A stretch of 64,000 nucleotides of DNA from the IMG/VR virus record IMGVR_UViG_3300042566_001780, positions 62,001-126,000 of that record; one strand, given 5' to 3'. The position numbers were made by a program, and so were the translations under genes. Below, in pieces: positions 22,109-39,295 of this stretch. Under the pieces are notes generated by a model that saw only the letters and a list, made by a program, of their open reading frames with translations, made no database searches and was not told where the DNA came from. Position 1 is the stretch's first letter; each line of letters begins with the position of its first letter.

Positions 22109-22116
22109 TATAAATA
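22109..22116 (+). promoter_or_regulatory. T4-type late promoter TATAAATA
   Basis: Exact consensus 30 nt before the terL start. Confidence 0.75.
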
Positions 22117-22146
22117 GATTATCATATCACCATTTGAAATGTAAAG

Positions 22147-24642: not shown

Positions 24643-24644
24643 GT

Positions 24645-25751: not shown

Positions 25752-26071
25752 GCACACTATCCATGTGGGAAATTCTTGTTCCCACTCTTCGTCGAGTCGA
25801 TGGGAAACCGTATCGCACTCGCTACCATCGCATATGGGATGAGAAAGTTCGGTCCATCACTGGTGGGTTGACGATCTTGACCCCAGCAAAAGGTCAGTGG
25901 GTAGCACCATGTGGACAACTCTATTCTGAGCGAATGATTCCAGTTCGGATCATGGCTACTCGTGAGCAGATTGAGCAAATTATTGATCACACGATCGTCT
26001 ACTATGATCAGCTTGCCGTTCTTTGTTATAGAATTAGCGATGAAGTTATTATGCGTTACGCAGAGGAATGA
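25748..26071 (+). CDS. hypothetical protein
   Basis: Coupled ORF; GGLTILTPAKGQW. Confidence 0.6.
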   Translation: MSTLSMWEILVPTLRRVDGKPYRTRYHRIWDEKVRSITGGLTILTPAKGQWVAPCGQLYSERMIPVRIMATREQIEQIIDHTIVYYDQLAVLCYRISDEVIMRYAEE

Positions 26072-26074
26072 AGT

Positions 26075-26269
26075 ATGAGTCAAAATCTGCGCACTGTCAA
26101 AAAGAAGCAAGGTGATGAATGGATCACTGTTCGATTGGAGAACGTCTCAATTGGTGATACCTTTATCATGCTAGATGATGGCGTTCGATTTGGTGATGAA
26201 TGGATTGCTATGTCTGAACCTACTCTTCGAGACGGGATTTGGGGAATCAATGCAAAAGCAAAGGAATAA
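26075..26269 (+). CDS. hypothetical protein
   Basis: Short ORF in operon. Confidence 0.5.
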   Translation: MSQNLRTVKKKQGDEWITVRLENVSIGDTFIMLDDGVRFGDEWIAMSEPTLRDGIWGINAKAKE

Positions 26270-26272
26270 AGA

Positions 26273-26557
26273 ATGAATTTTCCAGATCTAGTGAATGGTG
26301 GATTTGAGGCTTGTGCCTCAATTTTCATTTTGAACCACTGCAGAGTTTTGTGGAAATCAAAACAAGCAAACGGTGTTTCTGTAGTAAGCACCATGTTCTT
26401 TTTGGCATGGGGATTGTGGAATCTTTTCTACTATCCTCATCTTGGTCAAATGTTTAGCTTCTACGCGGGAATTGCAGTAGTGCTAGCAAACTTGATTTGG
26501 ATTGGGTTCATCCTCAAGATTCGCATGATGGAAAAGAAAAATGTACTGGGAAGATGA
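26273..26557 (+). CDS. small three-TM membrane protein, PQ-loop/SemiSWEET-like
   Basis: KQANGVS..WGLWNLFYY, three hydrophobic helices. Confidence 0.5.
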   Translation: MNFPDLVNGGFEACASIFILNHCRVLWKSKQANGVSVVSTMFFLAWGLWNLFYYPHLGQMFSFYAGIAVVLANLIWIGFILKIRMMEKKNVLGR

Positions 26558-26789
26558 AGAGGATGAAGTTCCACAATTCAATCATGAGCTTCGAGCTGCA
26601 GCAGAAGAGGGCATTGAATGGTTGTCTGGTGGAAAAAGAAAAGCGCCAATGATGAAGGGCCGCGCTGATGGTTCTTGTGGTGTTTGTGAAAAGCCAGTTG
26701 AAGCTAGATCAGGTAACAAATTCTATTGTTTGAATTGTCAATCTTATGGTTATGTTCGCATGTGGTATGCTGCAGATCCAGATCTGTAA
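26541..26789 (+). CDS. zinc-ribbon hypothetical protein
   Basis: CGVC..CLNC. Confidence 0.5.
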   Translation: MYWEDEEDEVPQFNHELRAAAEEGIEWLSGGKRKAPMMKGRADGSCGVCEKPVEARSGNKFYCLNCQSYGYVRMWYAADPDL

Positions 26790-26831
26790 CTAAAACTGTT
26801 ACACTTTTCTTGGTGAGGTTGAACGTTTTTA

Positions 26832-26848
26832 GTGTACAATTCATCCAT
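26832..26848 (+). promoter_or_regulatory. early promoter -10/start motif GTGTACAATTCATCCAT
   Basis: Same motif at 30010, 50510, 62791 and 20417-20434 (minus). Confidence 0.6.
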
Positions 26849-26874
26849 CGCAACATCAACTTCACATAAACATC

Positions 26875-27318
26875 ATGTACTTCGAACTGGTCAAAGGTAA
26901 AGTCACTCAGGTATCTGAGAAAGCCCCCACTTACAAAGTTGACTGGACGTATGACACAAAAACTGGCACTGGTTGGACTTCTACTCGTGACATCAAGTCG
27001 TATGAAGAAACCATTCGTATCGCAGAAGAAATTTCTGCCCTGACGGAAAAGTTTCATCTGCCAGTTGATTGTGGTGATTGTGTCTATCCGCGGTATGATG
27101 TCATTCTTCCTCCTGCCATTGGTGACAAAGTCAGCCGCAGTTTCAACGGTGACACAACTCCCTGTGGTGAAATTGTAAAAATTACTCCTAAGTGGAGAAT
27201 TACAACCTCGGATGGTGTAAAATTCAATCGTGTGAAGAACACTGGAAGCTGGAAAGTTATTGGCGGCTATCAATCTTTGGTCAATGGACACTATCATGAA
27301 CGCAACCCTCACTTTTGA
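26875..27318 (+). CDS. early hypothetical protein
   Basis: ORF directly after the early motif. Confidence 0.65.
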   Translation: MYFELVKGKVTQVSEKAPTYKVDWTYDTKTGTGWTSTRDIKSYEETIRIAEEISALTEKFHLPVDCGDCVYPRYDVILPPAIGDKVSRSFNGDTTPCGEIVKITPKWRITTSDGVKFNRVKNTGSWKVIGGYQSLVNGHYHERNPHF

Positions 27319-27319
27319 A

Positions 27320-27547
27320 ATGACTGCAGACGAACTCAAATTCAAGCAACCCCGAAGCTTGATTTCTCGAATGATTGCTGGTTCTCTGACTAGCTATGTC
27401 AATGAACTTCGCGCTGAAGGCAAAGACAAAGAACATGTGCTGAAGCAAGCACTGTTTATGATCGAGTCCCACCGCAAGCATGTCGGTTTCACGACCGAGA
27501 CCCAAAAAGTTTTGAAGGAAAAAATCAATGAGCTCTTCGAAGGTTGA
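27320..27547 (+). CDS. hypothetical protein
   Basis: Likely start ATG 27320 in ORF 27260..27547. Confidence 0.5.
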   Translation: MTADELKFKQPRSLISRMIAGSLTSYVNELRAEGKDKEHVLKQALFMIESHRKHVGFTTETQKVLKEKINELFEG

Positions 27548-27869
27548 TCCTATGGTGAAAGCAATTGCTATTGAAGCTTTTGAAGCTGCAGCAGTCGCAA
27601 CCCAAAAGTACTTGGATGAAAATCCCGGTCAATGGTACCCTTGTGGTTTTGCATGGGTCAAAATCAAGCCAGCACGTGGAAAGTTGGTGTCTTACTTGAA
27701 GGAAGAAAAGCTGGGACGTACTGATGAGTTTGAAGGCGGTTTCAGCGTGTGGAATCCTTCTGGTCATGCTACTCAATGGATGGATGCAAAACGCGCCGGT
27801 GCAGTAGCATTTGCTGAAGTTCTGAAGAAGTATGGTATTAACGCCTTCGCTCAAACTCGGATTGATTGA
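27528..27869 (+). CDS. conserved phage hypothetical protein
   Basis: PCGFAWV..TQWMDAK..A.AFA motif. Confidence 0.65.
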   Translation: MSSSKVDPMVKAIAIEAFEAAAVATQKYLDENPGQWYPCGFAWVKIKPARGKLVSYLKEEKLGRTDEFEGGFSVWNPSGHATQWMDAKRAGAVAFAEVLKKYGINAFAQTRID

Positions 27870-28225
27870 TAATGAAAATCAAAGTCCTTGATCGAAGTGT
27901 GATGCTTGGGAATATGAGTGATCTTCACGGGATGACTCCTGAAGAAGTAGCAAACTATTTCCATTCAATCCACAAGGATTATGAAAAGGAAACGTTCAAT
28001 CAAGGCCATGAAGTGAAGATGCGCTTCATCTATGGTTACGGTGACATTGAATTGGAAATTTTCCGTCTTGAAACTGACAGAGAGTTTGAAAAACGAGTTG
28101 CAAAAATAAAGCGAGAAGCGGAAAAAGAAGCTCGCGAAAAAGAATTGCAAGCAAAGAAAAAAGAGGGTGCAGAGTACAAGACTTTCTTGCGGCTCAAGAA
28201 AAAATTTGAAGGCAGCGAAAAATGA
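27866..28225 (+). CDS. hypothetical protein
   Basis: RLETDREFEKR coiled coil ending LKKKFE. Confidence 0.6.
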   Translation: MIMKIKVLDRSVMLGNMSDLHGMTPEEVANYFHSIHKDYEKETFNQGHEVKMRFIYGYGDIELEIFRLETDREFEKRVAKIKREAEKEAREKELQAKKKEGAEYKTFLRLKKKFEGSEK

Positions 28226-28638
28226 AAAAAGATGTGTTAGAATTTGCAGAAGCTGCGGGAATTCGATACAACCACAAAACTGCGGCAAAGATCACAAAGT
28301 TTGCTCAGCTGATTTTAGCTGAGCTGATCAAAGAGATCAATGCACAACCCAATCCGCAAAATCTCAATTACAAACCTTCTGAGACCTATGCGTATTTGGT
28401 CCAAAATCATTTTGATCTTGAGATCAACGAATTCACTGGTGTAAAATTCTCGAAAGTTTCAAAGAACACTGATGTGATGACTTTGAAGGAATTTGAAGAA
28501 GCTTGCGAAATGATCATGTTCACTCAGGATGACGGTGATGGTTATTTCATGAAATCCGAAACTGAAGAATCAAACATTAGCGTGTGGGGTTATGAAACTC
28601 CATCTTGGGATACCCATGTAGCTTGGTACAACAAGTAA
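28222..28638 (+). CDS. three-helix paralog family domain fused to C-terminal FTxDDGDGY..VAWYNK domain
   Basis: KFAQLILAE..QNHFDLE followed by a second module. Confidence 0.55.
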   Translation: MKKDVLEFAEAAGIRYNHKTAAKITKFAQLILAELIKEINAQPNPQNLNYKPSETYAYLVQNHFDLEINEFTGVKFSKVSKNTDVMTLKEFEEACEMIMFTQDDGDGYFMKSETEESNISVWGYETPSWDTHVAWYNK

Positions 28639-28643
28639 TTATT

Positions 28644-29780
28644 ATGTCAAATTTCCTCTTTGATTTCTTTGCTGAGTTCATCAAAGGTCCTATCTGGAAA
28701 CAGATGGAAGAAACCGTTGAAAACAGCCCGTGGCATCGTGAAGCAAACGTTGCTACTCATACTTTGATGGTGGTTTCGTATTTCAATGACCACTTTGCTC
28801 ACAAGTACACTGCAAAGCAACAAATGATTGCCATGTTGGCTCTCCTGTTTCATGATACTGGGAAGCCTGAAGCAGAAGAAGAGCTGGAAAAAGCTGATGG
28901 TTCTGGAAAATATCGCCGGTATGCTGGTCATGAGCTCGAGTCTGCTCACGTTTTCATGGAACAATATTTGGCCTCTTCATTGAAGGATCACTTGTCTGTC
29001 GAAGAAGCTCGTGCTATTCGTTGGATCATTGAGCATCATTTGCCCTATGGTTACAAAAACAAGCAGAAGCTTCAAGATCTGAAGAAGGCAACTATGTCGG
29101 CTCTTCATGCAGCAGATTGCCCAATGGGATTGTTCTATGATTGTCTGCGTGCTGATGCTCATGGCCGCATTAGCGATAACCATGAAGAGAAGCTGCAGAA
29201 CGTGGAAACTTGGATTTATTCTTTTCATGCTGTCACTTTTGAAGTTGGTGCAAAACGTCAGTATTCTGGAAAGATGTACATTTTGGTGGGCCCGTCGGGA
29301 TCAGGCAAGAGCACTTTTACTCAAGAGCTTTCGAAGAATCATGACGTTAGCGTCATCAATGATGATCAGATGAAGATGGATTTGTTCAGGAGCATCTTCG
29401 CTAATGACGCGCGATCTGATTTTGACATCTATGATGATGCATGGCAATATTGCACGATGGACCACAAACCAGAATATACGTTTTATCGCAACAAACAAAT
29501 CAGTGACATTGCATCAAATACTGCTAAAAACGGATCCGTTGTAGTTTGTGATATGGTCAATTCTTCTAAGAAACGCCGTGCGCAAATGGTAGATGTTGCC
29601 AAATGCCACGATCTGGATGTTGAGGTAGTTGAGTTTTGGGTTCCGCTTGATACCCTGCTTGCTCGACAGCAATCTCGGAGTGACAAGAGAGTCCCGGTTG
29701 ATTCCATCAAGAAACAATATAGCGCCATTCAACTTGCATGGTTGGGTGTCGAGTGCAACTCCGTAAAGGTGATTTCATGA
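28644..29780 (+). CDS. HD phosphohydrolase plus P-loop polynucleotide kinase (HD-Pnk-like)
   Basis: WHRE..HT, LFHDTGK, GHE, EHH; GPSGSGKS; RSDKRVP. Confidence 0.75.
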   Translation: MSNFLFDFFAEFIKGPIWKQMEETVENSPWHREANVATHTLMVVSYFNDHFAHKYTAKQQMIAMLALLFHDTGKPEAEEELEKADGSGKYRRYAGHELESAHVFMEQYLASSLKDHLSVEEARAIRWIIEHHLPYGYKNKQKLQDLKKATMSALHAADCPMGLFYDCLRADAHGRISDNHEEKLQNVETWIYSFHAVTFEVGAKRQYSGKMYILVGPSGSGKSTFTQELSKNHDVSVINDDQMKMDLFRSIFANDARSDFDIYDDAWQYCTMDHKPEYTFYRNKQISDIASNTAKNGSVVVCDMVNSSKKRRAQMVDVAKCHDLDVEVVEFWVPLDTLLARQQSRSDKRVPVDSIKKQYSAIQLAWLGVECNSVKVIS

Positions 29781-30051
29781 GTCAAAAAATGCAGCGAAGC
29801 TTTAGCCCCCGGTCTAAAGTCCTTCAAAAAATTTTGGCAAAGGGGCTTCATGCCCTTTTGTGCCATCATGAAGATGATGTTCTAGTCATTCATCATGTCC
29901 ATGATTCTTACAGTAAGCTTCAAGTTGAGTTTGAAATTCGCCATCACACCGGCAAAATTTCATTTGGCCGCAAAATTTTTGCAGGTTGATGGTTTTCAAC
30001 CTAGAATTGGTGTACAATTCATTCATGTTTAACACCAACTGAGATTCTGAA

Positions 30052-30243
30052 ATGATTGCTCAAACTTCTGGAATTCGCAAAGGCTATTTGGTGAAAGCCG
30101 AAGACATCAAGCATGAAGGTCGACTTTCTACTGAAGATATTCAGGACATTGACCACAAATTGGTGTTTGAATGGGTGAAGACTGGTCAGTGGAAACGCCA
30201 TGACTTTGAAAAGTGGCTGAAGGCAATTCGCGTCATTGAATAA
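30052..30243 (+). CDS. hypothetical protein
   Basis: VFEWVKTGQW motif; follows the early promoter at 30010. Confidence 0.55.
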   Translation: MIAQTSGIRKGYLVKAEDIKHEGRLSTEDIQDIDHKLVFEWVKTGQWKRHDFEKWLKAIRVIE

Positions 30244-30553
30244 GGAAACAAAAATGAGTGCTCTTCCTAAGTGGGATCCTATTTTTCTTCAAGAAGAATT
30301 TGGTGATGATGTTGTATCAAAGTTGGCATTTTTGTCTGGTTGCAATCGTCACTCTCTAGGTAATTCTAGCGTGAATGGTTGGATCATTGATGATGAGACT
30401 CTTCGCCAGTTTGCAGTTGCAATTGTGGATGAATGTCGAGAAGTTTTGAAGAAAGAAATGCAACGGCTTGATGAAATTCCTGGTCGTGAAATCAGCGCAC
30501 AGTCTTTTGAAACCGCGCATCTGTTGATCAAAAAACATTTCAATCAACCATGA
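30236..30553 (+). CDS. three-helix paralog family member
   Basis: QFAVAIVDEC..IKKHFN. Confidence 0.65.
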   Translation: MNKETKMSALPKWDPIFLQEEFGDDVVSKLAFLSGCNRHSLGNSSVNGWIIDDETLRQFAVAIVDECREVLKKEMQRLDEIPGREISAQSFETAHLLIKKHFNQP

Positions 30554-30756
30554 CTCTTGAACTGAATAAAATCAAGCGATCGATGCATGCAGATGTCATC
30601 GCATCTTTTTGGATGATGCTGCGTGAACTTGAAGAAAAAGCTGATTATGGCAGCCAACTTGACAAAGTTCAAGTTGAAGGTTGGTATAGGCAATGGAATC
30701 GAATGACTGGCGATGACAAAGTGCCACGTTGGAAACAGGTGAAAAATGATGAATGA
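30550..30756 (+). CDS. hypothetical protein
   Basis: Coupled ORF. Confidence 0.55.
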   Translation: MTLELNKIKRSMHADVIASFWMMLRELEEKADYGSQLDKVQVEGWYRQWNRMTGDDKVPRWKQVKNDE

Positions 30757-30988
30757 ACGAATCAAAGAGCTTGCTATGCAAGCAGACCCAGAATATACTG
30801 GTGATGAAGATGACAACATGGGTCATGCTTTGGTAGGAAATGCCGCTATTCAAAGATTTGCCGAGTTGATTGTGAAGGAATGTGCTATGCTTATTGGGGG
30901 TTTTGAAATTACCCAAGAAGTTGCCCTTGACGAATATGTTGATTATGAAGCAAGTGCGGTATTGAAAGAGCATTTCGGAGTTGAATGA
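30746..30988 (+). CDS. three-helix paralog family member
   Basis: MNERIKELA..RFAELIVKEC..LKEHFGVE. Confidence 0.75.
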   Translation: MMNERIKELAMQADPEYTGDEDDNMGHALVGNAAIQRFAELIVKECAMLIGGFEITQEVALDEYVDYEASAVLKEHFGVE

Positions 30989-31150
30989 TGAAAGTTAACA
31001 CCGCAGTACGTCGTATTGAAAATGCTATCAATTGCGGGGACTACAAAGAAGCAGATGCTATGCTAAAACGTTATTGCCGTAAATTTGGTAATCGTAAGTT
31101 CACTTATTGGCTTAGAACGTTTATTACAAATGGACTTTGGGAAATGAATT

Positions 31151-31402
31151 ATGAATGAACGAATCAAAGAACTTTTGCCCAACCCATTTGCTGTAGATTA
31201 TCAAGCTAGAGAAACGCCGCTTGATTTGTACACTGAAGTAGAAATGCAAAAATTTGCTTCTCGAATCATTGAAGAATGTGCAGCTATTATGCGAGCGCGT
31301 CTCTTCCCGGATTATGAGGGAAATTCACATAAAGTAGCACACAACAATGCACTGCTATGCGCAATCAGCGACTTGAATGAATTGATGGAGAATGAAGAAT
31401 GA
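31151..31402 (+). CDS. three-helix paralog family member
   Basis: MNERIKELL..KFASRIIEEC. Confidence 0.7.
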   Translation: MNERIKELLPNPFAVDYQARETPLDLYTEVEMQKFASRIIEECAAIMRARLFPDYEGNSHKVAHNNALLCAISDLNELMENEE

Positions 31403-31574
31403 ATACAGTTGTTTGGATTATGCTACTAGCCACTCATGGCTATAAGATGTCTGCAGGACCTGAATTTTCCACAAAAGAAAAGTGCGAGAAGGCTGCAGTC
31501 GTTATGGTTAATGCATTCGATGCAACACGACTCATCGGTAAATCTGAGATGCCACTTTGCGTGAAGATCGAAAA

Positions 31575-31808
31575 ATGAATGAACAACACATCAAGCAACT
31601 TGTCGGTCAAGCTAAATTCATGACTGAGGAAGCGCTCAACTGCAAATTATCATTCAATTCTGATCTGAAGACATTTAGTGAATTTTTTGCTGACTTGATT
31701 ATTCGCGAATGCGCAGATGTAGTTGCAGACATTAACCAAGACTATGATGGTGGGTCCACGACAGTCAATGCTGCAGAAGAAATCAAACAACATTTTGGAA
31801 TTGAATGA
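31575..31808 (+). CDS. three-helix paralog family member
   Basis: MNEQHIKQL..FADLIIREC..IKQHFGIE. Confidence 0.7.
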   Translation: MNEQHIKQLVGQAKFMTEEALNCKLSFNSDLKTFSEFFADLIIRECADVVADINQDYDGGSTTVNAAEEIKQHFGIE

Positions 31809-32029
31809 TGAATATCCGCATTCAGGAAATCAAAAATCGAGCTTCAGTGTGGTGTGATGAGAACATTCCTGAACAGTTTTCTGAAGAAACCAATGGTTAT
31901 GGAGCGGCTTGGGAAAACAAGTTTGCAGAGTTGATTATTAATGTGTGTGCTATATTGGGCGACTTTGCAGAAAATGGCGACGTTTTGAAACCTAGTGTGA
32001 TGATCAAAGATTATTTTGGAGTAGAATGA
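31805..32029 (+). CDS. three-helix paralog family member
   Basis: MNIRIQEI..KFAELIINVC..IKDYFGVE. Confidence 0.7.
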   Translation: MMNIRIQEIKNRASVWCDENIPEQFSEETNGYGAAWENKFAELIINVCAILGDFAENGDVLKPSVMIKDYFGVE

Positions 32030-32072
32030 TGCATGAACGAATTCAAGCGTTGATTAAGGATGCCACTAGAAT
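31997..32072 (+). repeat. 76-bp direct repeat, copy 1 (gene junction)
   Basis: 74/76 identical to 37146-37221 by manual alignment. Confidence 0.85.
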
Positions 32073-32277
32073 AATCCCTGCTGATTGGAATTGCGTAGAA
32101 GATCTTGAAGAATTTGACAAAGAAAAATTTGCTAAGTTAATTATACAGGAATGTCTGAAAATAACAGGTAGTCTTTCTATGCTACATTCTAGAAAAGATG
32201 TGGCATTTGATGTAGGCTACACAATGGGATGCGAGCGAGCAACTAAAGAAATCAAAAAACATTTTGGAGTAGAATGA
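32026..32277 (+). CDS. three-helix paralog family member
   Basis: MHERIQAL..KFAKLIIQEC..IKKHFGVE. Confidence 0.7.
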   Translation: MMHERIQALIKDATRIIPADWNCVEDLEEFDKEKFAKLIIQECLKITGSLSMLHSRKDVAFDVGYTMGCERATKEIKKHFGVE

Positions 32278-32278
32278 A

Positions 32279-32539
32279 ATGCAATACCTTTTGACACAGG
32301 AAGAGTATGATGCTCTGCATACCCACAAAGAGGAACACACTGCTCTTGAGAAAAAGAAACTACAAAAACTCTGCACCAAGATTGCAAATGAAATGCCAGT
32401 AGCATGGGGTTGGGGTGGCCCTGATCCTAAGCCATGGGGATGCTATTTGACAGCCAGAGACAATGATGAAGAATGGTATTGCGATAAGTGCCCTGTTCAG
32501 GAAATTTGTCCGTCTGATGAGAGAGCTTACTCACAATGA
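32279..32539 (+). CDS. Cys-rich hypothetical protein
   Basis: MQYLLTQEEY..WGC..YCDKCPV..CP. Confidence 0.6.
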   Translation: MQYLLTQEEYDALHTHKEEHTALEKKKLQKLCTKIANEMPVAWGWGGPDPKPWGCYLTARDNDEEWYCDKCPVQEICPSDERAYSQ

Positions 32540-32781
32540 ATGAAAAATTGAAAGATCTTGCATTCAGGGCAGGATTTGTTGGTGAAAGCATGTTTCCCAT
32601 TCTTGGCACATGTCAGGAAACTGCTTTGCAAAATTTTGCCAATTTGATTGTTGAAGAATGTTGCCAAGCTGCAAAGACGAAGCTATTGCCTAATTTGAGA
32701 GTTCATGAGACTCATCAAATGTCTTACAATGAAGGCATTCATTCTACTATCTTGGCCATCAATTCAAATTTCAAGAAGTGA
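32536..32781 (+). CDS. three-helix paralog family member
   Basis: MNEKLKDLA..NFANLIVEEC. Confidence 0.7.
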   Translation: MNEKLKDLAFRAGFVGESMFPILGTCQETALQNFANLIVEECCQAAKTKLLPNLRVHETHQMSYNEGIHSTILAINSNFKK

Positions 32782-33011
32782 ATATGCTAAGCCCAAAACT
32801 AAATGAGCTTCATTCTGCAGCATGGCTTGAAATTTCCAAGGGTCTCAATAATTGTGAACTGCAGTCTCATGAATTTGAAAGTGCAGTCAACGCTAAGTTT
32901 GCAAAGCTAATCATTGAAGAGTGCATCAAGTTTTTGCCTGAAGATTGTCAAGACCCGAAAACAAAAATTCATCTAAGCTATGTTCTTTTGAACCATTTTG
33001 AGGTAGAATAA
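32778..33011 (+). CDS. three-helix paralog family member
   Basis: KFAKLIIEEC..LNHFEVE. Confidence 0.7.
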   Translation: MNMLSPKLNELHSAAWLEISKGLNNCELQSHEFESAVNAKFAKLIIEECIKFLPEDCQDPKTKIHLSYVLLNHFEVE

Positions 33012-33249
33012 TGTCATTAGCAGAGAAATGGAAAAGTTTTGTTAAACGTCATCTTGATGCTATGATGGAAGCAGCTCAGGCAGATTCAGAAATTTCTTAT
33101 GCCGAATGGCAAGAGCTCAAAACTGAGTACAAGAAAACACTAGGTGAAGACTATGAACGAGGACAAAAAGTTCCAAAATCGCAGGTACGATGATTTCCAT
33201 AATCATGGTGGTTGGAAGAAGCGATTCAATCGATGGCTGAAAAAGTTCT

Positions 33250-33513
33250 TTGGTGAATGAAATGAAAAGCTACGAGGAAATGATTCAGTGGCACGTTGAT
33301 CAAGCAGACAACGGGAAGATTCGCCACTATGAATGGCCATCGTACTTTGCTATTTCGGAAGTTTTTGGAAAAGATGTCAACTCAGTTGTCGCTGACATTA
33401 ATGGTGAAAAGGCGCGGCGTGAAGAGATCAAAAAGCAGCAACGAAAAGAACAGCATCGTGTTGAAAATGAAAAACGCCGTCTAGCTAATTTACAGAAAGC
33501 TCAAAATGTCTAA
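33250..33513 (+). CDS. hypothetical protein
   Basis: ORF in early operon; start probably ATG near 33262. Confidence 0.5.
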   Translation: MVNEMKSYEEMIQWHVDQADNGKIRHYEWPSYFAISEVFGKDVNSVVADINGEKARREEIKKQQRKEQHRVENEKRRLANLQKAQNV

Positions 33514-33757
33514 AAGAATCTTGGAAATTGCTGAACGCGCTGGCATTCATTTTAGTAATAAGAGGATTCTTAATGGTGGCAATGAAATTGCTCAGTTTGT
33601 TACAAAATCTAGTGTGGAGTATTTTGCTGAGCTAGTTGCCCAAGAATGTGCTAGAGTTATTGAAGAGCACGCAAAACTGTTTCCTGAGGCAGATACAACT
33701 TGGCGTTGTGCTATGATAGAATCTGCCAAAGTCGTAAAAGATAATTTTCGGAGTTGA
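33506..33757 (+). CDS. three-helix paralog family member
   Basis: MSKRILEIA..YFAELVAQEC..VKDNF. Confidence 0.7.
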   Translation: MSKRILEIAERAGIHFSNKRILNGGNEIAQFVTKSSVEYFAELVAQECARVIEEHAKLFPEADTTWRCAMIESAKVVKDNFRS

Positions 33758-33760
33758 AGA

Positions 33761-33988
33761 ATGAATCCAGATGCTATCAAAAGATTTCGGTTCGCTGCTG
33801 CTGATCATGCAAATGAATTGAAACCTCTAGGTATTATGAAGTGGAATGAAGTTCGTGATGAAAAATTTGCTGAGTTGATCATTGAAGAAAATTCATCTAA
33901 AATGGTGGCAGCTTTGATGAGTGATCCTAATTTTGCAAAAGCTATGGATGCTTATTACGAAATCAAATGGGCACATCGTTTCGATTGA
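33761..33988 (+). CDS. three-helix paralog family member (divergent C-terminus)
   Basis: EKFAELIIEE. Confidence 0.6.
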   Translation: MNPDAIKRFRFAAADHANELKPLGIMKWNEVRDEKFAELIIEENSSKMVAALMSDPNFAKAMDAYYEIKWAHRFD

Positions 33989-33995
33989 ATAGATT

Positions 33996-34268
33996 ATGAA
34001 TAGCATCACAAAACGTCTAATGTCAGCGGCAGGTGCAGGATTTTATGACAAATGGCATCAAGGTAAGCACACAATAGAATTTACTACTGAAAAATTTGAT
34101 CCTGAAAAATTTGCCGAACTGATTGTACAAGAATGTATTTGCCTTGTGCTAAATGGGAAGCATGATAATGAAAAGTTTGACATTAATGACAAATTTCATT
34201 GTGGACACAACATTGCCCTGGAAAACGCTTCCGAAGGAATAGCAAAGCATTTCGGAGTTGAAAAATGA
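33996..34268 (+). CDS. three-helix paralog family member
   Basis: FDPEKFAELIVQEC..IAKHFGVE. Confidence 0.7.
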   Translation: MNSITKRLMSAAGAGFYDKWHQGKHTIEFTTEKFDPEKFAELIVQECICLVLNGKHDNEKFDINDKFHCGHNIALENASEGIAKHFGVEK

Positions 34269-34585
34269 TCTCAGCAAAAGAAGCTAAAGAACTCTATGAA
34301 AAGAGCAGCGCCCGCGTCAAAGTGTTTCTAGACAAAGAAGTTGAACCAAAAGTCAAAGAAGCTATTGATCTAGGCAAGAATTCCTGCACAATCTATCTTG
34401 GTGCAGAGCCGGTATTCAAGATTATTGCACCATCGGTTTTTCACCAACATGTGATGGAACAATTGCGCATTCTAGGCTACAAGGTTCAGTTTGGCCGTTA
34501 TGGTGAAACGTATGTGCCTCGAGGTCTGGGTGATGGGGTTTGCAGAGACGAGTACTGCAACTACGGCATTATGATTAGTTGGTGA
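34265..34585 (+). CDS. hypothetical protein
   Basis: MISAKEA..LGYKV..ISW architecture. Confidence 0.6.
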   Translation: MISAKEAKELYEKSSARVKVFLDKEVEPKVKEAIDLGKNSCTIYLGAEPVFKIIAPSVFHQHVMEQLRILGYKVQFGRYGETYVPRGLGDGVCRDEYCNYGIMISW

Positions 34586-34599
34586 TCTAAGGAAATGAA

Positions 34600-34872
34600 A
34601 TGACAATTGGATTCAGGAATCTTGTTCTTGGTGATGAAAGCACTACACCAGTGTCAGTCACAAAGTTGTTGAATGATGATCAGCAACTACAAAATTACGT
34701 GACAGCAATCAGGACAGAACTTGCTCGAGTAGAAGCCCAAAAGAAAATGCTGTCTGAGCTGCTTGAAGAGCAAATGGCAAAATGTCAGCACCTCGTTTTC
34801 AGGGACGTTGATGCTGGCATGTATGCATTTCGAAAATGCGTAATTTGCGGTTTTGACATGGGAAGCGTATGA
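34600..34872 (+). CDS. hypothetical protein with C-terminal CxH/CxxC
   Basis: ORF with AAGGA RBS. Confidence 0.55.
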   Translation: MTIGFRNLVLGDESTTPVSVTKLLNDDQQLQNYVTAIRTELARVEAQKKMLSELLEEQMAKCQHLVFRDVDAGMYAFRKCVICGFDMGSV

Positions 34873-35135
34873 TTGCTAAGATGGATGAGCTGGCCTTGAA
34901 AGCTGGTGCTTCATTCATTGGTGGGCACATTGAATTTCCGCCCGGATCAGGAGATTGGGTTTGGTACGAGTACAAGCACATCGACTATAATGACATGTGC
35001 CACCGCGAATTCATGAAGCTAATTGTTGAAGAATGCTTCAAGGCTGCTATGATTGAATCAAAAGGTCACATAAACCCGGTTGATCTAATGAATAGAATGA
35101 AAGAAATGACGGGGCTCAGTCAAAATGACATCTAA
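34869..35135 (+). CDS. three-helix paralog family member
   Basis: MDELALKAG..EFMKLIVEEC. Confidence 0.6.
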   Translation: MIAKMDELALKAGASFIGGHIEFPPGSGDWVWYEYKHIDYNDMCHREFMKLIVEECFKAAMIESKGHINPVDLMNRMKEMTGLSQNDI

Positions 35136-35928
35136 CAAAGACATTATCAATCAACTCCAAGACTGCATTCGTGATCTACTTGAGTTTGTAGAATCGCACA
35201 GTCATCATTGGAATGGCGTAGTTGCGCAGCATCCGCAAATTTTGGCAGAAGTTGCACATCCGCTATTGGAATTGAATGCAGCTGACATGAAGATGCCGGT
35301 GAAGACTCCAACACCTCCAGCAATGGCGGAAATGAGCGATATCATTTTTGCTGAAGGATGGAATGCATGCGTTGAGGCATTCTTCGATGGTGTTGAATCA
35401 GATCCGCCAACAATTATCACCGTAACTGAGACACTTGGAAAAGAGCCAGTTGGGTGGCAAGTTTGGTCTGGCGTGATGGATATGCGCCCACATTGGCCGC
35501 CCTTTCAAACTAAACCAGAAGCTGAAGCTCTTGCTGAGCGTATCAAAAGTAATACAGAAGTTCGTCCTGTGTATGCTGGTGAAATGAAACAATCACCAAA
35601 GCAGTACTTCTATAAGAATAACGAATGCACTGCACAATCCGCAAAAGATCCTGGCTGCAAATGTTGGTGGGACATTGGCACAGGTCCATTAAAAGATGGG
35701 ACTCCTACTGATTTTCGTGAAAAGCCAAAGGTGTCACAATGTGAACTTCCTCCCGCTGGTTGGATTTGCACTAGACAAGCAGGACATGATGGCCCCTGTG
35801 CAGCCCATAATGCTGAATCTATCATTGAGCTTCAAACTCAACTAGAAAATTTGAAAAAGGTCGTTGATGTCAAAATGAATGAGATTAGAAATGTCATTAT
35901 GTCTACCTTGACTAAGGATTTGAAATGA
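35125..35928 (+). CDS. mosaic hypothetical protein (Ead/Eaa-like modules)
   Basis: GWNAC, EPVGW..RPVY, PPAGWICTR..HDGPCAA modules. Confidence 0.5.
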   Translation: MTSNKDIINQLQDCIRDLLEFVESHSHHWNGVVAQHPQILAEVAHPLLELNAADMKMPVKTPTPPAMAEMSDIIFAEGWNACVEAFFDGVESDPPTIITVTETLGKEPVGWQVWSGVMDMRPHWPPFQTKPEAEALAERIKSNTEVRPVYAGEMKQSPKQYFYKNNECTAQSAKDPGCKCWWDIGTGPLKDGTPTDFREKPKVSQCELPPAGWICTRQAGHDGPCAAHNAESIIELQTQLENLKKVVDVKMNEIRNVIMSTLTKDLK

Positions 35929-36275
35929 TGAAGTGCTTTAGCATCGATGATGAGAACTTCAACTATGATTCTCTCGGTGATTTAATAATGTCAACTAGTC
36001 CTGAAGTGGGCGATTTCTACTATGAAGCAGATTGTGTTGATGTGATTGTTGACAATTATCTGGTGAATCATTTGCTTGAAGATGCCGATGATTTGCTATA
36101 TGACGATCTCGGTGAAATCTATGATAGTGATTTTTCAAAGGTGTCTGATGAAGCCAAGAAAGAATTGCTAATTTTGCTGCAAACCTGGGCAGCAAAGCAC
36201 GTCAACTTGGATCGCTATTGGAAAATTGTTGGGGAAAGCAGGAAGCTGCAATTCACCAAAGAAGATCTTGAATGA
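35925..36275 (+). CDS. acidic hypothetical protein
   Basis: Coupled ORF. Confidence 0.55.
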   Translation: MMKCFSIDDENFNYDSLGDLIMSTSPEVGDFYYEADCVDVIVDNYLVNHLLEDADDLLYDDLGEIYDSDFSKVSDEAKKELLILLQTWAAKHVNLDRYWKIVGESRKLQFTKEDLE

Positions 36276-36285
36276 AGGATTGAAA

Positions 36286-36948
36286 ATGTTTGAAGAAGAA
36301 TGGGACGCGGCTGATTGGGTCAAATTGCTTAAGCTAGCTGCAAATGGAAAAACCACTTTGTCAAAAGACCAGCTCAAAGAAGTAGCTGCGTTTCTTTTTC
36401 AACAAGCTACAGAAATTGTGAAATTGAAAAGTAAGTTGGAAGAGGAGGGTGAGATTGTTATCACTACTAGTTTTGAAACTGGCAAGTGTCTTGCTGTCAC
36501 ACGCCAAGATGAAGAAGGTCGAATCCTAAGAATTGTTTGGGAAGCACCTGATGTTGTTGAACAGGATGAGCCGAGCGTAGAAGAAGCTCTTCGTGTTTTG
36601 CATAGTGTAGAGACCTCAGTGCAAAGTGGAATCAATGTCACCGATGGTTGGAGAATTTTGCGAAATCTCATTAGCAAGTTCAAAATTGTCCCTCACGGTG
36701 TGCAAAAAGCTATTGAGAATGCGGGATTCACTTTGGTGAAAAACCAGTTTGGTTATCATCTCATGAAACTTGGCAAAATTGAGGCACATTCTGTTCAAGA
36801 TGAAGAATCTCAACCAGTAGCTTGGAGACTTCGTGATGAAGAGCCTGGAATGAAACCTCGATGGGTCTACTATGATGAGGACGATTTTGTAAAAGGCGTC
36901 ATTCCACATGAGGTTTTTCCAAAGCTTCAAAAGCTCTACACAAAATGA
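36286..36948 (+). CDS. mosaic hypothetical protein
   Basis: AVTRQDEEGRILRIVW and QPVAW modules; start uncertain. Confidence 0.5.
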   Translation: MFEEEWDAADWVKLLKLAANGKTTLSKDQLKEVAAFLFQQATEIVKLKSKLEEEGEIVITTSFETGKCLAVTRQDEEGRILRIVWEAPDVVEQDEPSVEEALRVLHSVETSVQSGINVTDGWRILRNLISKFKIVPHGVQKAIENAGFTLVKNQFGYHLMKLGKIEAHSVQDEESQPVAWRLRDEEPGMKPRWVYYDEDDFVKGVIPHEVFPKLQKLYTK

Positions 36949-37178
36949 AACTAACTGCACAACAGAAGTTTGACCTACTTCCAAAAATTCAACTCAAGGG
37001 CGAAAAAAAGCCTACTACTCAAGTTTGGTTGACCCAAAAAGATGCACTCAACTATGCAGATCAAATTGAATCTGCTGCTAGTGAACATTTTCAAAAACGT
37101 ATCGATCAATTGGAAGAAATCATTGAAGAGCAACGCAGAGCTCTAGTGATGATCAAAGATTATTTTGGAGTAGAATGA
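36945..37178 (+). CDS. hypothetical protein ending in the family C-terminus MIKDYFGVE
   Basis: Unrelated body with repeat-derived end. Confidence 0.55.
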   Translation: MKLTAQQKFDLLPKIQLKGEKKPTTQVWLTQKDALNYADQIESAASEHFQKRIDQLEEIIEEQRRALVMIKDYFGVE

Positions 37179-37221
37179 TGCATGAACGAATTCAAGCATT
37201 GATTGAGGATGCCACTAGAAT
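37146..37221 (+). repeat. 76-bp direct repeat, copy 2
   Basis: 74/76 identical to 31997-32072. Confidence 0.85.
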
Positions 37222-37375
37222 GAACCGAATTTTGAAAAATGGTCTTATTACGGCCTACATCATTTTTATGTCACTTGCTTTTCTTGGAAAAACTGGTGAC
37301 TATTTTGTAGCTGGTGTTGCTGCACTATCAATGTTTGCAGTTTGGTCATTTGCTGTCAAAATTAAAACAAAATGA
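37175..37375 (+). CDS. two-TM protein with repeat-derived N-terminus
   Basis: MMHERIQALIEDATR followed by a hydrophobic body. Confidence 0.5.
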   Translation: MMHERIQALIEDATRMNRILKNGLITAYIIFMSLAFLGKTGDYFVAGVAALSMFAVWSFAVKIKTK

Positions 37376-37698
37376 AAACAAAAGATTTTCCATCAGTTGT
37401 AGCTGCAAGAAAAGTTGTAGAAAAACAGGCTGCGCGCTATCATCAAATGATGGGCACTAATCATCAAATGAATGAAGCAACCAAGCAGCTCATCATCAAA
37501 TCCGGTCTTTCCCCAACTGAACAATGTTATGATGCGCATGGTTACTGTTTTGAAGCAACTAACCAAAAGCTGAAAGCACTGGTCGAGAATGTAGTTCGAC
37601 AAGCTATTTGGATTGCTTATCATAGTCATGCAATGAATAAGGATGCCAAATTCACCGAGCATCTGGATGAAGTGAAACGTTACTATGGGATTGAATGA
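37372..37698 (+). CDS. three-helix paralog family member (divergent)
   Basis: MNEATKQL..VKRYYGIE. Confidence 0.55.
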   Translation: MKTKDFPSVVAARKVVEKQAARYHQMMGTNHQMNEATKQLIIKSGLSPTEQCYDAHGYCFEATNQKLKALVENVVRQAIWIAYHSHAMNKDAKFTEHLDEVKRYYGIE

Positions 37699-37842
37699 TG
37701 AAGGGTCCTCGAGAATTGAAGAACTATGTAGCTCGATTTCGCAAAGAGCTCAAGGCAATGCATTGGGATGACCTGCTTATCTTCAAACTGCAACGCTGTA
37801 AGAAATGGTTCAAACGGGACAAACGAATCAAGAAAGAAGACT

Positions 37843-38067
37843 ATGAATGAAATAGTGAAGCAACTTTTGGATGAATCAACCCAAACTATTGAAATTATTG
37901 ATCCTGACACCAAGCTTACGCATCACCGGTCTTTCATTGATCAAGAAGAATTTGTGAAGTTGCTTGTTGAAGAAATCCAGCACCGATGCATGCAAGAATG
38001 GTTTGGCGATTCTCTTGAAGATATTATCTATGATAGATTGCCGAAGCACTTTGGACTAACATCCTAA
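37843..38067 (+). CDS. three-helix paralog family member
   Basis: MNEIVKQLL..EFVKLLVEE..PKHFGL. Confidence 0.6.
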   Translation: MNEIVKQLLDESTQTIEIIDPDTKLTHHRSFIDQEEFVKLLVEEIQHRCMQEWFGDSLEDIIYDRLPKHFGLTS

Positions 38068-38088
38068 TATTTGTAGAATTCACCAGAT

Positions 38089-38118
38089 GAGGCCCAGAGA
38101 TGAAAATTTCTGGGCCTC
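38089..38118 (+). terminator. hairpin/terminator ending the early operon
   Basis: GAGGCCCAGAGA..TTTCTGGGCCTC. Confidence 0.6.
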
Positions 38119-38263
38119 AATTAGTTTCACATCCATCAAAACAAAGCGCCCTCAGAGCCCTCGGCAATCCTAAAACTTTGTTACAAATAGGATGTAAAAA
38201 AGTTACAATAGACTCTTATCGAAATTTGTTGATGAAATTGGAAGAAATCATCACCAGATTTTG

Positions 38264-38271
38264 CTAAATAG
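38264..38271 (+). promoter_or_regulatory. late promoter CTAAATAG
   Basis: Upstream of the ssb gene. Confidence 0.55.
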
Positions 38272-38320
38272 ATTTGTCTGCAAAGACATTTTTTAACTTT
38301 TCAAAACTTTAGGAGTTTTT

Positions 38321-39244
38321 ATGACAACCAAACGTTCCCTTGCTGATCTTGCTGCTGCTTTTTCTTCCAAAGCTAATGAAGGCGGATCCAGCCCCACTTG
38401 GAAGCTTTTCTTCAATTTCTGGAAAGCTCCTGTCGATAGCGTATCCACTGTTCGTTTCTTGCCTGATGCTAATCAAGATAACCCTATGGGTTTCCTTGTT
38501 GAAAATCTAGTGCATGAGCTGACGATCAATGGCAAACGCGAAAAAGTGCCTTGCTTGAAGATGTACGGTGAATCTTGTCCAGTTTGTGAGCTTTCTGCTC
38601 AATACTACGATGAGAAGAATCCGCTGCATTCTGAAGAACTTGGTAAGAAGTTCTATCGTAAAAAGTCTTACATTGGCCAAGTGCTTGTGATTGACACTCC
38701 CGTTGAACATGATGGTGACCAACTTGTCAAGCTAATTGAATTCGGTCCTCAGGTCTTTAAGCAAATCCAAGCTGCATTCCAGTCTGGTGATCTTGAAGAA
38801 GCCCCCTATGAGCTTAAGGGTGGTTACAATTTCCGTTTCCGTAAGACTTTGACTGGCGCAGGTCAGAATTCTTACACCACTTCTAACTTTGCTCCTAAGC
38901 AAACTGACGTAGCAGACGATACGCTGAATGCAATTACACTGTATGATCTTTCTCAGTATCGCACTCCGAAAATGGATCGCACTGCTTTGGAAGCTATGCT
39001 CGTAGCTGCTCAGACCGGTGAAAGCTATACTGCAGAATCCGATGCTCCTGCTAAGACTGCAGACACAGTGAACAAGCTTCGCGATCGTCTTGCACAATCG
39101 GCCGATGCTGATGATGCTCCTGCGGCAGAAACTCCTAAGGCATCTGCTCCTGAAGAGTCGTCTGGTGGCAACAAGCAATCTGTGGTGGAAATGCTTCGCG
39201 CACGTGCTGCAGCTGCTAAGGCTGCACAGCAAGCTGCTCAGTAA
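38321..39244 (+). CDS. single-stranded DNA-binding protein, T4 gp32-like
   Basis: VRFLPD, H..C..CPVC zinc site, GYNFRFRK, Y..SNF. Confidence 0.9.
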   Translation: MTTKRSLADLAAAFSSKANEGGSSPTWKLFFNFWKAPVDSVSTVRFLPDANQDNPMGFLVENLVHELTINGKREKVPCLKMYGESCPVCELSAQYYDEKNPLHSEELGKKFYRKKSYIGQVLVIDTPVEHDGDQLVKLIEFGPQVFKQIQAAFQSGDLEEAPYELKGGYNFRFRKTLTGAGQNSYTTSNFAPKQTDVADDTLNAITLYDLSQYRTPKMDRTALEAMLVAAQTGESYTAESDAPAKTADTVNKLRDRLAQSADADDAPAAETPKASAPEESSGGNKQSVVEMLRARAAAAKAAQQAAQ

Positions 39245-39257
39245 TTTTTACTAGCAC

Positions 39258-39295
39258 GAGGCCCATCTTGTTTACTCGAGATGGGCCTTATTTTT
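39258..39295 (+). terminator. intrinsic terminator
   Basis: GAGGCCCATCTTG..CGAGATGGGCCTT then ATTTTT. Confidence 0.75.

Follow-up and report, generated by a model that had tools for sequence, protein, structure and literature searches.

A family of shuffled mini-proteins encoded by a giant lake-water phage

Our first goal was to establish how many related mini-protein genes lie within an array in a lake-water giant phage. The genome assembly is 291,687 bp, and 82% complete. The window analysed is a stretch of 64,000 nucleotides and all positions below, unless stated, refer to it. The array lies directly downstream of the terminase large subunit gene, and upstream of a gene 32-like gene. It contains paralogous genes, encoding proteins of about 80 residues, interspersed with unrelated small genes. 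To count copies, we built a profile from 248 family sequences, almost all from other metagenomes, and searched all 3,281 stop-to-stop open reading frames of the genome. The search identified 12 members, with E-values between 2e-6 and 8e-26. Eleven are at 30.7-35.1 kb on the plus strand and one is on the minus strand. Three further genes are divergent, with E-values of 1e-4 to 5e-4, and are backed by hhalign at 88-93%. One more is doubtful. No other open reading frame in the genome reached an E-value below 0.8. All features are listed in Table 1.

Table 1. Features of the mini-protein array and its surroundings. H1, H2 and H3 are constant segments; V1 and V2 are variable segments. E-values are from the family profile search unless stated. 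L013 is a 90%-identical relative; L017 is a further locus with orthologues; P numbers denote individual family proteins.
Position	Strand	Feature	Evidence
19743-19997	-	Solitary family member (84 aa), outside the array and on the opposite strand	E 7e-14; V1 type (AGF...PIDWSCDY) recurs in P0054 and in Limnohabitans phage DC31
28222-28638	+	Divergent member; residues 1-69 have the family fold motifs, followed by an unrelated 69-aa C-terminal extension	E 4.5e-4; hhalign 91%, E 1e-6; omega 0.03 against L013
28605-29780	+	Interspersed non-family gene: HD domain plus AAA_33 P-loop kinase	Pfam AAA_33 5e-19, HD 1.6e-3; conserved in L013
30236-30553	+	Divergent member; only H2, V2 and H3 recognisable, behind a different N-terminal half	E 1.4e-4; hhalign 88% over residues 51-103
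30746-30988	+	Family member, likely start at second ATG (30749); forms a cassette with 30985-31158, absent from L013	E 1e-18; 402-bp indel bounded by 24-28-nt H1-coding repeats at 30745-30772 and 31147-31174
31151-31402	+	Family member	E 9e-16; L013 orthologue 90% identical (aa), omega 0.10
31575-31808	+	Family member (open reading frame from 31557, true start 31575); chimera relative to L013	H1 and V1 of L013 gene 7549-7794, V2 and H3 of L013 gene 7791-8012; crossover in H2 coding segment (about 31680-31714)
31805-32029	+	Family member; 3' end is part of the donor of the 81-nt junction patch	E 1e-11
32026-32277	+	Family member, AlphaFold model 1; cassette absent from L013 and from an RNA-library contig of run X24	E 8e-26; pLDDT 81; 248-bp indel bounded by repeat ATTTTGGAGTAGAATGA; joint 32033 to 32344
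32536-32781	+	Family member; L017 has the same H1 and V1 with strongly diverged V2 and H3	E 2e-16
32778-33011	+	Family member (GTG start)	E 4e-9; orthologues in L013 and L017
33506-33757	+	Family member; P0039 in L017 has identical H2-V2-H3 behind an unrelated H1-V1	E 6e-18
33761-33988	+	Family member lacking the invariant Cys (EEN) and the HFGVE end	E 1e-8
33996-34268	+	Family member, AlphaFold model 2	E 9e-19; pLDDT 92.5, pTM 0.76; elements H3-11, E15-21, E24-30, H36-52, H66-86
34869-35135	+	Family member, long V1 and divergent C-terminus; no synonymous difference from L013	E 2e-6; dS 0 against about 0.4 in neighbouring genes
37146-37226	+	81-nt junction patch (end of H3, stop/start overlap, start of H1) copied from 31997-32077; gives non-family gene 36945-37178 a family tail and membrane-protein gene 37175-37375 a family head	95% identity; L013 has native sequence here; bounded by 5-7-nt microhomologies (GTGAT, TAGAAT)
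37372-37698	+	Doubtful, very divergent member with 33-aa N-terminal extension; ends in VKRYYGIE	E 0.09; hhalign 17%
37843-38067	+	Divergent member, last gene of the array; listed open reading frame starts at 37768, L013 gene call starts at the ATG equivalent to 37843	E 5e-4; hhalign 93%, full length
38088-38119	+	Strong terminator-like hairpin (14 pairs) closing the array	
38321-39244	+	Gene 32-like SSB gene	
39258	+	Strong hairpin	

The array was first noticed in a sequence-only reading, which described about 16 paralogues with a constant three-helix frame and two hypervariable loops. That observation is confirmed, with corrections. The outlying copy, listed without a strand, is on the minus strand. 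Furthermore, the two genes that carry only part of the frame (36945-37178 with the C-terminal motif, and 37175-37375 with the N-terminal motif) are not decayed members. Instead, they result from the 81-nt patch copied into unrelated genes. The constant motifs are real: MNERIKELAxQA, EKFAELIVxEC and IKxHFGVE, with nearly invariant M1, N2, I5, L8, A12, F, A, L, I, E, C, H, F and G. The segments between them differ in both length and sequence. V1 has a median of 22 aa (range 10-55) and V2 a median of 31 aa (range 10-52).

We next sought to understand the fold of these proteins. Two independent AlphaFold models share the same topology: helix, beta-hairpin, helix, helix. Hence, V1 is modelled as a hairpin rather than a loose loop. 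V2 is modelled as the end of helix 2, a loop and the start of helix 3. A plain three-helix bundle similar to an affibody, as suggested by the sequence-only reading, is therefore not what the models show. Consistent with this, no protein A-type domain is among the 50 best listed matches of each PDB fold search. An affibody or protein A Z domain is an up-down-up bundle of about 58 aa without beta structure and, like the proteins here, a small helical frame that tolerates very different surface segments. Here, both models contain a two-stranded hairpin between helices 1 and 2, together with a long helical hairpin. The variation lies in inserted segments of different length, not in surface residues of fixed helices.

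To determine whether the family has relatives of known function, we used sequence and structure searches. Ten copies gave no Pfam hit above noise, and one weak PHROG hit (phrog_37680, E 0.006). No precomputed Pfam assignment was present for any of 120 listed relatives. Profile searches against solved structures gave a best E-value of 0.013, on a 25-residue stretch. Foldseek gave a best E-value of 0.17 and the VIA wide search a best Z of 5.1, below its stated noise level of 7-8. For model 1, partial and non-significant overlaps with MarR or winged-helix regulators were apparent (1ku9 E 0.19, TM 0.50; Atlas TM 0.56-0.65 by query but 0.26-0.42 by hit). These regulators have a helix-turn-helix plus wing within a domain of about 140 aa, and the overlaps were not reproduced with the better model 2. 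A tblastn search of three members, against 50,697 GenBank phage records, gave nothing, one weak environmental hit, and one distant copy in Limnohabitans phage DC31. A text search for the motifs in about 8.4 million papers found no relevant paper, and keyword searches found no description of the family. As the sequence-only reading stated, relatives are known only as hypothetical proteins of environmental phages. Even so, the family holds at least 5,788 clusters at 50% identity, all viral. Same-strand arrays of 5-12 copies occur in other, independent phage contigs. Conversely, the family is absent from the nearest cultured relative, RsoM2USA.

We then compared orthologues. Conservation of the variable segments between orthologues had been listed by the sequence-only reading as a result that would refute it. 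Across 821 codons, omega between orthologues is 0.087, compared with 0.103 for neighbouring genes, so these are real, selected genes. For V1 and V2, omega is 0.112, against 0.091 for the helices (Fisher p 0.87). Hence, the variable segments differ only between paralogues and, between orthologues, are as constrained as the helices. Note that this refutes ongoing hypermutation but not the idea of distinct specificities. Between paralogues, synonymous sites are saturated (pS 0.55-0.82), while pN is only 0.20 in H2. The constant helices are thus kept at the protein level, and concerted evolution of the constant segments is rejected. We also considered whether the conserved FGVE codons (TTTGGAGTnGAA) are retained because they carry the ribosome-binding site for the next cistron. 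Only 2 of 11 family genes have GGAG, GAGG or AGGA within 20 nt upstream, so this is not a general explanation.

We then compared related loci to identify the source of diversity. Relative to L013, two cassette indels are bounded by H1 or H3 repeats, and one gene is an H2 crossover chimera. One of the three indels relative to L013 (33282-34547) is not at a constant segment. In other samples, P0039 and P0018 are chimeras. Aberrant products, with duplicated H2 or fused units, also exist. Many short joints between constant segments, with sides of 20-25 nt, come from other family members in mixed communities and were not counted as evidence. To examine reassortment family-wide, we clustered V1 and V2 separately for 282 unique proteins, a sample biased towards the best profile hits. 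Of 42 multi-member V1 clusters, 34 join two or more V2 clusters. Similarly, 26 of 29 V2 clusters join two or more V1 clusters. The correlation between V1 identity and V2 identity is 0.036. We conclude that the constant coding segments, a role for which the sequence-only reading had missed, are the recombination joints that generate diversity.

Gene context and composition were also examined. No neighbouring gene consistently accompanies the arrays, and AAA_33 kinases recur in two contexts only. In other phages, copies sit among replication and nucleotide-metabolism genes: dCMP deaminase and ThyX in phage DC31, and ligase and 5'-3' exonuclease in another locus, L021. Contigs from RNA libraries lie on the array, although DNA carry-over cannot be excluded. 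The proteins are acidic, with a mean net charge of -5.8, and V1 holds 21% D+E and 13.6% F+W+Y. Cys and His are frequent in V2, but the peak of second cysteines at +27 comes from one common V2 type. A metal site formed by the invariant Cys and the HFG His is unlikely since, judged from helix registers in model 2 alone, these residues sit at opposite ends of the helical hairpin.

Our data describe a virus-only family of acidic, soluble and, from sequence alone, cytoplasmic proteins, with the N-terminal helix, the start of helix 2 and the end of helix 3 constant in the predicted fold. The hairpin, and the far end of the helical hairpin, are variable. Exchange at H1, or at the H3/H1 gene junction, adds or removes whole cassettes, while exchange at H2 recombines V1 with V2. 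Each phage therefore holds a different set of V1 and V2 combinations and each combination, once made, is kept by purifying selection on the whole protein. No mutator is involved. We regard the nature of the family and, from sequence comparison, its mode of diversification as demonstrated. In contrast, everything concerning function, including binding, expression and its timing, is inferred. Each copy most likely binds a different host or rival-element macromolecule through V1 and V2, with the constant pole providing the fold. Together, the copies would form an accessory repertoire of inhibitors or modulators, for host takeover or counter-defence, whose make-up would track the local hosts. The accessory nature is consistent with copy content differing between phages that are 90% identical, and binding with the composition of V1 and the lack of any catalytic-family or other known-family match. 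However, the invariant Cys, and near-invariant Asn2, Glu and His, are more than a bare scaffold needs and could mark a shared active or binding site. We place the probability of this explanation at roughly 0.5.

The interpretation offered by the sequence-only reading, a diversified binder library expressed early for anti-defence or takeover, or subunits that hetero-oligomerise, is thus supported in part. The shared small fold with a constant frame (in the models), and the array of real genes interspersed with unrelated ones, are supported. The affibody analogy and hypervariability over time are not. An early operon and an anti-defence role remain conjecture, and the only hint of hetero-oligomerisation is a few natural two-unit fusions. 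A bolder, and tentative, extension is that the family is a natural combinatorial protein library. Two binding modules, the V1 hairpin and the V2 tip, would be reassorted across the phage metapopulation by recombination at protein-coding linker helices. Each phage would then carry a changeable panel of inhibitors, aimed at the defence or core proteins of its current hosts. This would be a phage counterpart of the poxvirus and ASFV immune-evasion multigene families, with a built-in shuffling mechanism.

Alternative explanations were considered. It is possible, though less likely, that the constant pole docks all copies onto one phage or host machine, or onto each other, with V1 and V2 recruiting or tuning different clients. 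Conservation of polar residues in the constant part is very strong (C 4.4 bits, N2 2.1, E 2.0, H 1.6). Two-unit fusions, such as P0127, P0134, P0191 and P0090, are compatible with units working side by side, and many copies lie in one operon-like run that would be co-transcribed. However, the fusions are few and could be recombination by-products. Some copies (33761, 34869 and 31151) lack the Cys or the HFGVE end and are still under purifying selection, and no consistent partner gene was found. Packaging and injection, with H1 resembling the capsid-targeting sequence of T4 internal proteins and the variable body as a polymorphic payload delivered with the DNA, is unlikely. That sequence is about 10 aa and ends in an L/I-x-E prohead protease site. 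The position after the terminase gene, and the constant N-terminus of otherwise different proteins, fit this idea. An I/L/M-x-E triplet occurs near the N-terminus of 6 of the 11 plus strand copies, but its Glu is weakly conserved family-wide (0.7 bits). In both models H1 is part of the folded core, not a detachable tag, and the replication-gene contexts above also argue against packaging. Still less likely are precursors of modified peptides, as in cyanobactin or prochlorosin families. Paralogues with constant ends and variable middles, and frequent Cys and His in V2, are suggestive, but both models are confidently folded globular domains in which the constant parts pack together, no maturation enzyme gene is linked, and two variable regions are split by a constant helix. 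Selfish repeats or spurious open reading frames, although the constant segments do promote their own duplication, deletion and ectopic copying, are contradicted by the selection data and the confident predicted fold. Targeted hypermutation, for example by a diversity-generating retroelement, has only the appearance of constant frames with very different inserts in its favour and is contradicted by the absence of any RVT_1 match in the 82% complete genome, variable parts of differing length, and their conservation between orthologues. Such retroelements have a reverse transcriptase, and a template repeat with A-specific mismatches to a variable repeat of equal length.

Similar principles operate in other systems. 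In gp38 tail-fibre adhesins of T2/T6-type phages, which have hypervariable segments separated by conserved glycine-rich motifs, short conserved segments form the structural core and delimit independently exchangeable specificity segments (PMC3157838), as here. However, gp38 is one virion protein per genome and binds a cell-surface receptor. The present family has 5-16 free-standing, predicted cytoplasmic mini-proteins per genome, helices rather than Gly-rich motifs, no sequence or fold relation, and only inferred targets. In hyperplastic regions of T4-type phages, PeSL cassettes (promoter-early stem-loops) are repeated short conserved sequences, at gene boundaries, that mediate insertion, deletion and replacement of small accessory genes between close relatives (PMC2839356, PMC4122927). 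PeSLs are non-coding units of sigma-70-like promoter and terminator. Here, the repeats are coding (the end of one gene plus the start of the next, and an internal helix), family genes abut or overlap by 4 nt, and no intergenic promoter or stem-loop recurs in the array. The only strong plus strand hairpins near the array are those in Table 1. Finally, multigene families of large eukaryotic DNA viruses, such as poxvirus Bcl-2-like proteins and ASFV MGF110/360/505, are tandem arrays of small paralogues that share one fold, have diverged surfaces, differ in copy number between strains, and change by recombination. The hosts, fold and scale differ, those families have documented immune-evasion targets, and here two modules reassort through a central conserved helix.

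This is one of the larger protein families with no name, and it usually occurs many times per genome. The data show in unusual detail how a phage accessory family diversifies. Conserved coding helices act both as the structural core, in the predicted fold, and as crossover sites. Whole genes and half-genes are thus exchanged while every product stays folded and under selection. The family also gives protein engineers a naturally validated two-module scaffold. If the variable modules are binding surfaces, the family would be a ready-made set of hundreds of natural binders on one tiny scaffold, and a new place to look for inhibitors of the defence systems of freshwater bacteria.

The array lies on a single 291,687-bp virus contig, of which the window is bases 62001-126000, and CheckV rates this contig 82% complete. 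It was assembled from lake water. The best DNA match is a lake-water metagenome, with partial matches in freshwater, aquatic and wastewater samples. The gene immediately beyond the array encodes a T4 gene 32-type single-strand DNA-binding protein. The nearest cultured relative of this protein is in Ralstonia jumbo phage RsoM2USA, at 45% identity, followed by those of XacN1, Xoo-sp13, Atu_ph07 and Serratia phage BF. We conclude that the genome is an uncultured jumbo myovirus of that broad group. Upstream of the array is a T4-type terminase large subunit gene, broken into several ORFs by intein-like parts (hits to Intein_splicing and PT-HINT). In L013, a 13.4-kb Logan contig that is a syntenic relative, about 90% identical to window 22115-38500, the same gene is one 705-aa ORF. 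Relative to L013, the window gene carries two extra insertions. Features of the region are collected below.

Coordinates of the array, its neighbours and related features (window coordinates unless stated)
Coordinates	Strand	Feature
19746-19997	-	Family ORF recovered by the first profile (19743-19997 in the longer form)
20445-22013	-	522-aa protein combining DUF7487, Vsr-like endonuclease and Mom-like hits
22147-25751	+	T4-type terminase large subunit gene with intein-like insertions
22469-23579		Insertion relative to L013; its ORF has ROS/MucR zinc-finger and REase_MTES_1575 hits and is probably a homing endonuclease
24561-25002		Second insertion relative to L013
28222		Family member, E between 1e-4 and 5e-4
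28605-29780	+	Fused HD-domain plus AAA_33 P-loop kinase gene, inside the array
30236		Family member, E between 1e-4 and 5e-4
30773-31146		One family gene plus a small neighbour, lacking in L013
31575-31808		Family gene, chimeric relative to two adjacent L013 genes
31686-33108		Region covered by RNA-library contigs, 93-97% identical
31997-32077		81-nt gene junction, recurring at 37146-37226
32026-32277		Family gene absent from L013; first AlphaFold2 model
32279-32539	+	86-aa Cys-rich non-family gene (…WYCDKCPVQEICP…) embedded in the array
32536		Family gene with a partly diverged orthologue in L017
33282-34547		Three family genes, deleted in L013
33506		Family gene sharing H2-V2-H3 with a protein of L017
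33996		Family gene; second AlphaFold2 model
34869-35135	+	Family gene with one non-synonymous and no synonymous difference from L013
37146-37226		Second occurrence of the 81-nt junction, 95% identical
37372-37698		Doubtful family member
37768/37843		Family member, E between 1e-4 and 5e-4
38088-38119	+	14-pair terminator-like hairpin, before gene 32
38321-39244		T4 gene 32-type SSB gene
39258-39289	+	Second long GC-rich hairpin
6001-6264 of PQ492658.1		Single distant family copy in Limnohabitans phage DC31

Our first goal was to understand whether the array of paralogous mini-proteins is real. A profile hidden Markov model, built from the 11 obvious copies, recovered these copies and also the minus-strand ORF. 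We then built an independent profile from 248 sequences, almost all from other metagenomes, and scored every stop-to-stop ORF in the genome. This identified 12 members with E values between 2e-6 and 8e-26. Three further ORFs had weaker scores but, in hhalign comparisons with a 143-sequence alignment, were supported at 88-93% probability. One ORF remained doubtful (see table) and nothing else in the genome scored. The constant motifs are MNERIKELAxQA, EKFAELIVxEC and IKxHFGVE, with the Cys being the most informative position (4.4 bits). Hence, what the sequence-only reading had observed, an array of small proteins with a constant frame and variable segments, is confirmed. Its interpretation was only partly supported, as detailed below.

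To understand the likely fold, we made AlphaFold2 models of two paralogues with unrelated variable parts. The product of gene 32026, modelled using a 12-sequence alignment, gave a pLDDT of 81. The product of gene 33996, using a 143-sequence alignment, gave a pLDDT of 92.5 and a pTM of 0.76. Both models have the same topology: helix 1, a two-stranded beta-hairpin, helix 2, a loop and helix 3. The sequence-only reading described a three-helix frame with two loops. In the models, the first of these (V1) is the hairpin, while the second (V2) is the C-terminal part of helix 2, the loop and the N-terminal part of helix 3. From the helix registers we infer that H1, the start of H2 and the end of H3 form a constant pole, with V2 forming the opposite pole. 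We found no match to a known fold or family. Searches of Pfam and PHROGs, and profile searches of the PDB, gave nothing. Foldseek comparisons with the PDB and AFDB gave a best E of about 0.1-0.2, and a VIA wide search gave a best Z of 5.1, within its stated noise. Only uncharacterised proteins of uncultured phages matched, in BFVD and the ESM Atlas.

We next determined the size and distribution of the family. In 1.84 billion proteins, the profile finds 5,788 cluster representatives, at 50% identity, with E <= 1e-3. Among clusters at 90% identity, it finds more than 7,000 of the 8,000 candidates scored. Those listed are about 70-145 aa, mostly 75-95, and none has a Pfam domain. In other contigs, the copies again form same-strand arrays: contig L001 has 12 copies in 7.6 kb and eight further independent contigs have 5-10. 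These arrays sit inside long runs of tiny unannotated genes, on contigs of up to 348 kb. Some relatives (P0010, P0040, P0051, P0217, P0141 and P0226) carry a Cys-rich, zinc-ribbon-like extension of 30-40 aa after HFGVEE. Others (P0127, P0134, P0138, P0191 and P0090) are natural fusions of two units. Conversely, RsoM2USA has no copy. A tblastn search of 50,697 GenBank phage records, with three members, found one weak environmental hit and one distant single copy, in the 76-kb Limnohabitans phage DC31. This is the only cultured-phage relative found. It is located among dCMP deaminase and ThyX genes, shares the AGF…PIDWSCDY V1 type with window 19743-19997, and hints that freshwater Burkholderiales are hosts of family-bearing phages. 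No paper in the literature library searched mentions the motifs.

Some non-family genes near the array have counterparts elsewhere. An AAA_33 kinase, next to a metallophosphatase, also lies near an unrelated array in contig L009. Together with the HD-domain plus AAA_33 gene in the window, this may be a polynucleotide kinase/phosphatase-type RNA repair function. A DUF7487 protein also lies near the array in contig L021. The Cys-rich gene keeps its place between family genes in the window, L013 and L017, the latter being a second, more distant relative. Finally, the hairpins either side of the gene 32-like SSB gene have related stems (GAGGCCCA…TGGGCCT) and isolate it as its own unit.

To understand the selection acting on the constant and variable parts, we compared the window with L013. 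For nine family orthologue pairs, omega was 0.087 (821 codons), compared with 0.103 for eleven interspersed non-family genes (1,605 codons). Using seven clean pairs, omega was 0.091 for the constant helices (231 codons), 0.112 for V1 and V2 together (326 codons) and 0.068 for V1 alone (160 codons). The difference between constant and variable parts is not significant (Fisher p 0.87). Hence, the variable parts are paralogue-specific, functional sequence and not fast-evolving spacers. Between paralogues within the window, synonymous sites of the constant segments are saturated (pS 0.55-0.82), while non-synonymous change in H2 is low (pN 0.20). We conclude that the frame is held by selection on the protein and not by recent gene conversion. 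Note that gene 34869-35135 has no synonymous difference from L013, while neighbouring genes have a dS of about 0.4. This suggests a very recent exchange of the gene between the two lineages.

To understand how the diversity arises, we read the differences between the window and its close relatives directly from the sequences. The segment at 30773-31146 is bounded by the 24-28-nt repeat ATGAATGAACGAATCAAAGA(G/A)CTT, which encodes MNERIKEL. Gene 32026-32277 is absent from L013, and also from a contig of run X24. This indel is bounded by ATTTTGGAGTAGAATGA, which encodes (H/Y)FGVE, the stop and the next start. Gene 31575-31808 equals the H1 and V1 of one L013 gene joined to the V2 and H3 of the next, with the switch inside the H2 coding segment. 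In L017, family protein P0039 has an H2-V2-H3 identical to that of window gene 33506, behind an unrelated H1-V1. In the same contig, the 32536 orthologue keeps H1-V1 but has a strongly diverged V2-H3, and an extra family gene is inserted after the 32026 orthologue. Similarly, P0018, a family protein from another sample, joins the H1 and V1 of L013 gene 7791-8012 to the V2 and H3 of window gene 32026. At the second occurrence of the 81-nt junction, L013 has different native sequence and the patch is bounded by 5-7-nt microhomologies. This explains two partial copies noted in the sequence-only reading. In contrast, the deletion in L013 that corresponds to window 33282-34547 is not at constant segments.

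Family-wide, the two modules assort almost independently. Among 268 unique proteins, 179 pairs have V1 at least 60% identical and, of these, 142 have V2 below 30% identical. Of 1,192 pairs with V2 at least 60% identical, 1,086 have V1 below 30% identical. The correlation between V1 and V2 identity is 0.036. With clustering at 50% identity, 282 proteins give 179 V1 types, 165 V2 types and 260 combinations, with one V2 type joined to 28 V1 types. Aberrant products were also found, with duplicated H2, two fused units, or H3 replaced by H1. The genome, at its rated completeness of 82%, has no reverse transcriptase.

While the evolutionary mechanism is well supported by these comparisons, any role of the proteins, their expression and its timing are inferred. 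The proteins have no signal or membrane segment and are strongly acidic, with a mean net charge of -5.8. V1 is rich in acidic and aromatic residues. The family is accessory. Its copy content differs between near-identical phages, yet each copy is individually conserved. The genes lie in one long same-strand run of small genes that ends at a strong terminator-like hairpin. These properties fit a panel of small binding proteins, each aimed at a different macromolecule. Small acidic phage proteins often inhibit nucleic-acid-binding host proteins. We put this reading at a probability of roughly 0.3-0.4. The main rival is that the conserved pole, with its invariant Cys and conserved Asn, Glu and His, docks all copies onto one partner or onto each other. 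The RNA-library contigs lie on part of the array, but DNA carry-over cannot be excluded. The proposal in the sequence-only reading that the array is an early operon remains, on present evidence, a supposition.

The mechanism resembles two cases from T4-type phages. In the gp38 adhesin, conserved motifs separate exchangeable hypervariable segments (PMC3157838), while PeSL cassettes are repeated boundary elements that shuffle accessory genes (PMC2839356, PMC4122927). The organisation resembles the multigene families of poxviruses and ASFV. The family is a member of none of these and has no name or described function. Here, the recombination joints are coding helices of a free-standing mini-protein.
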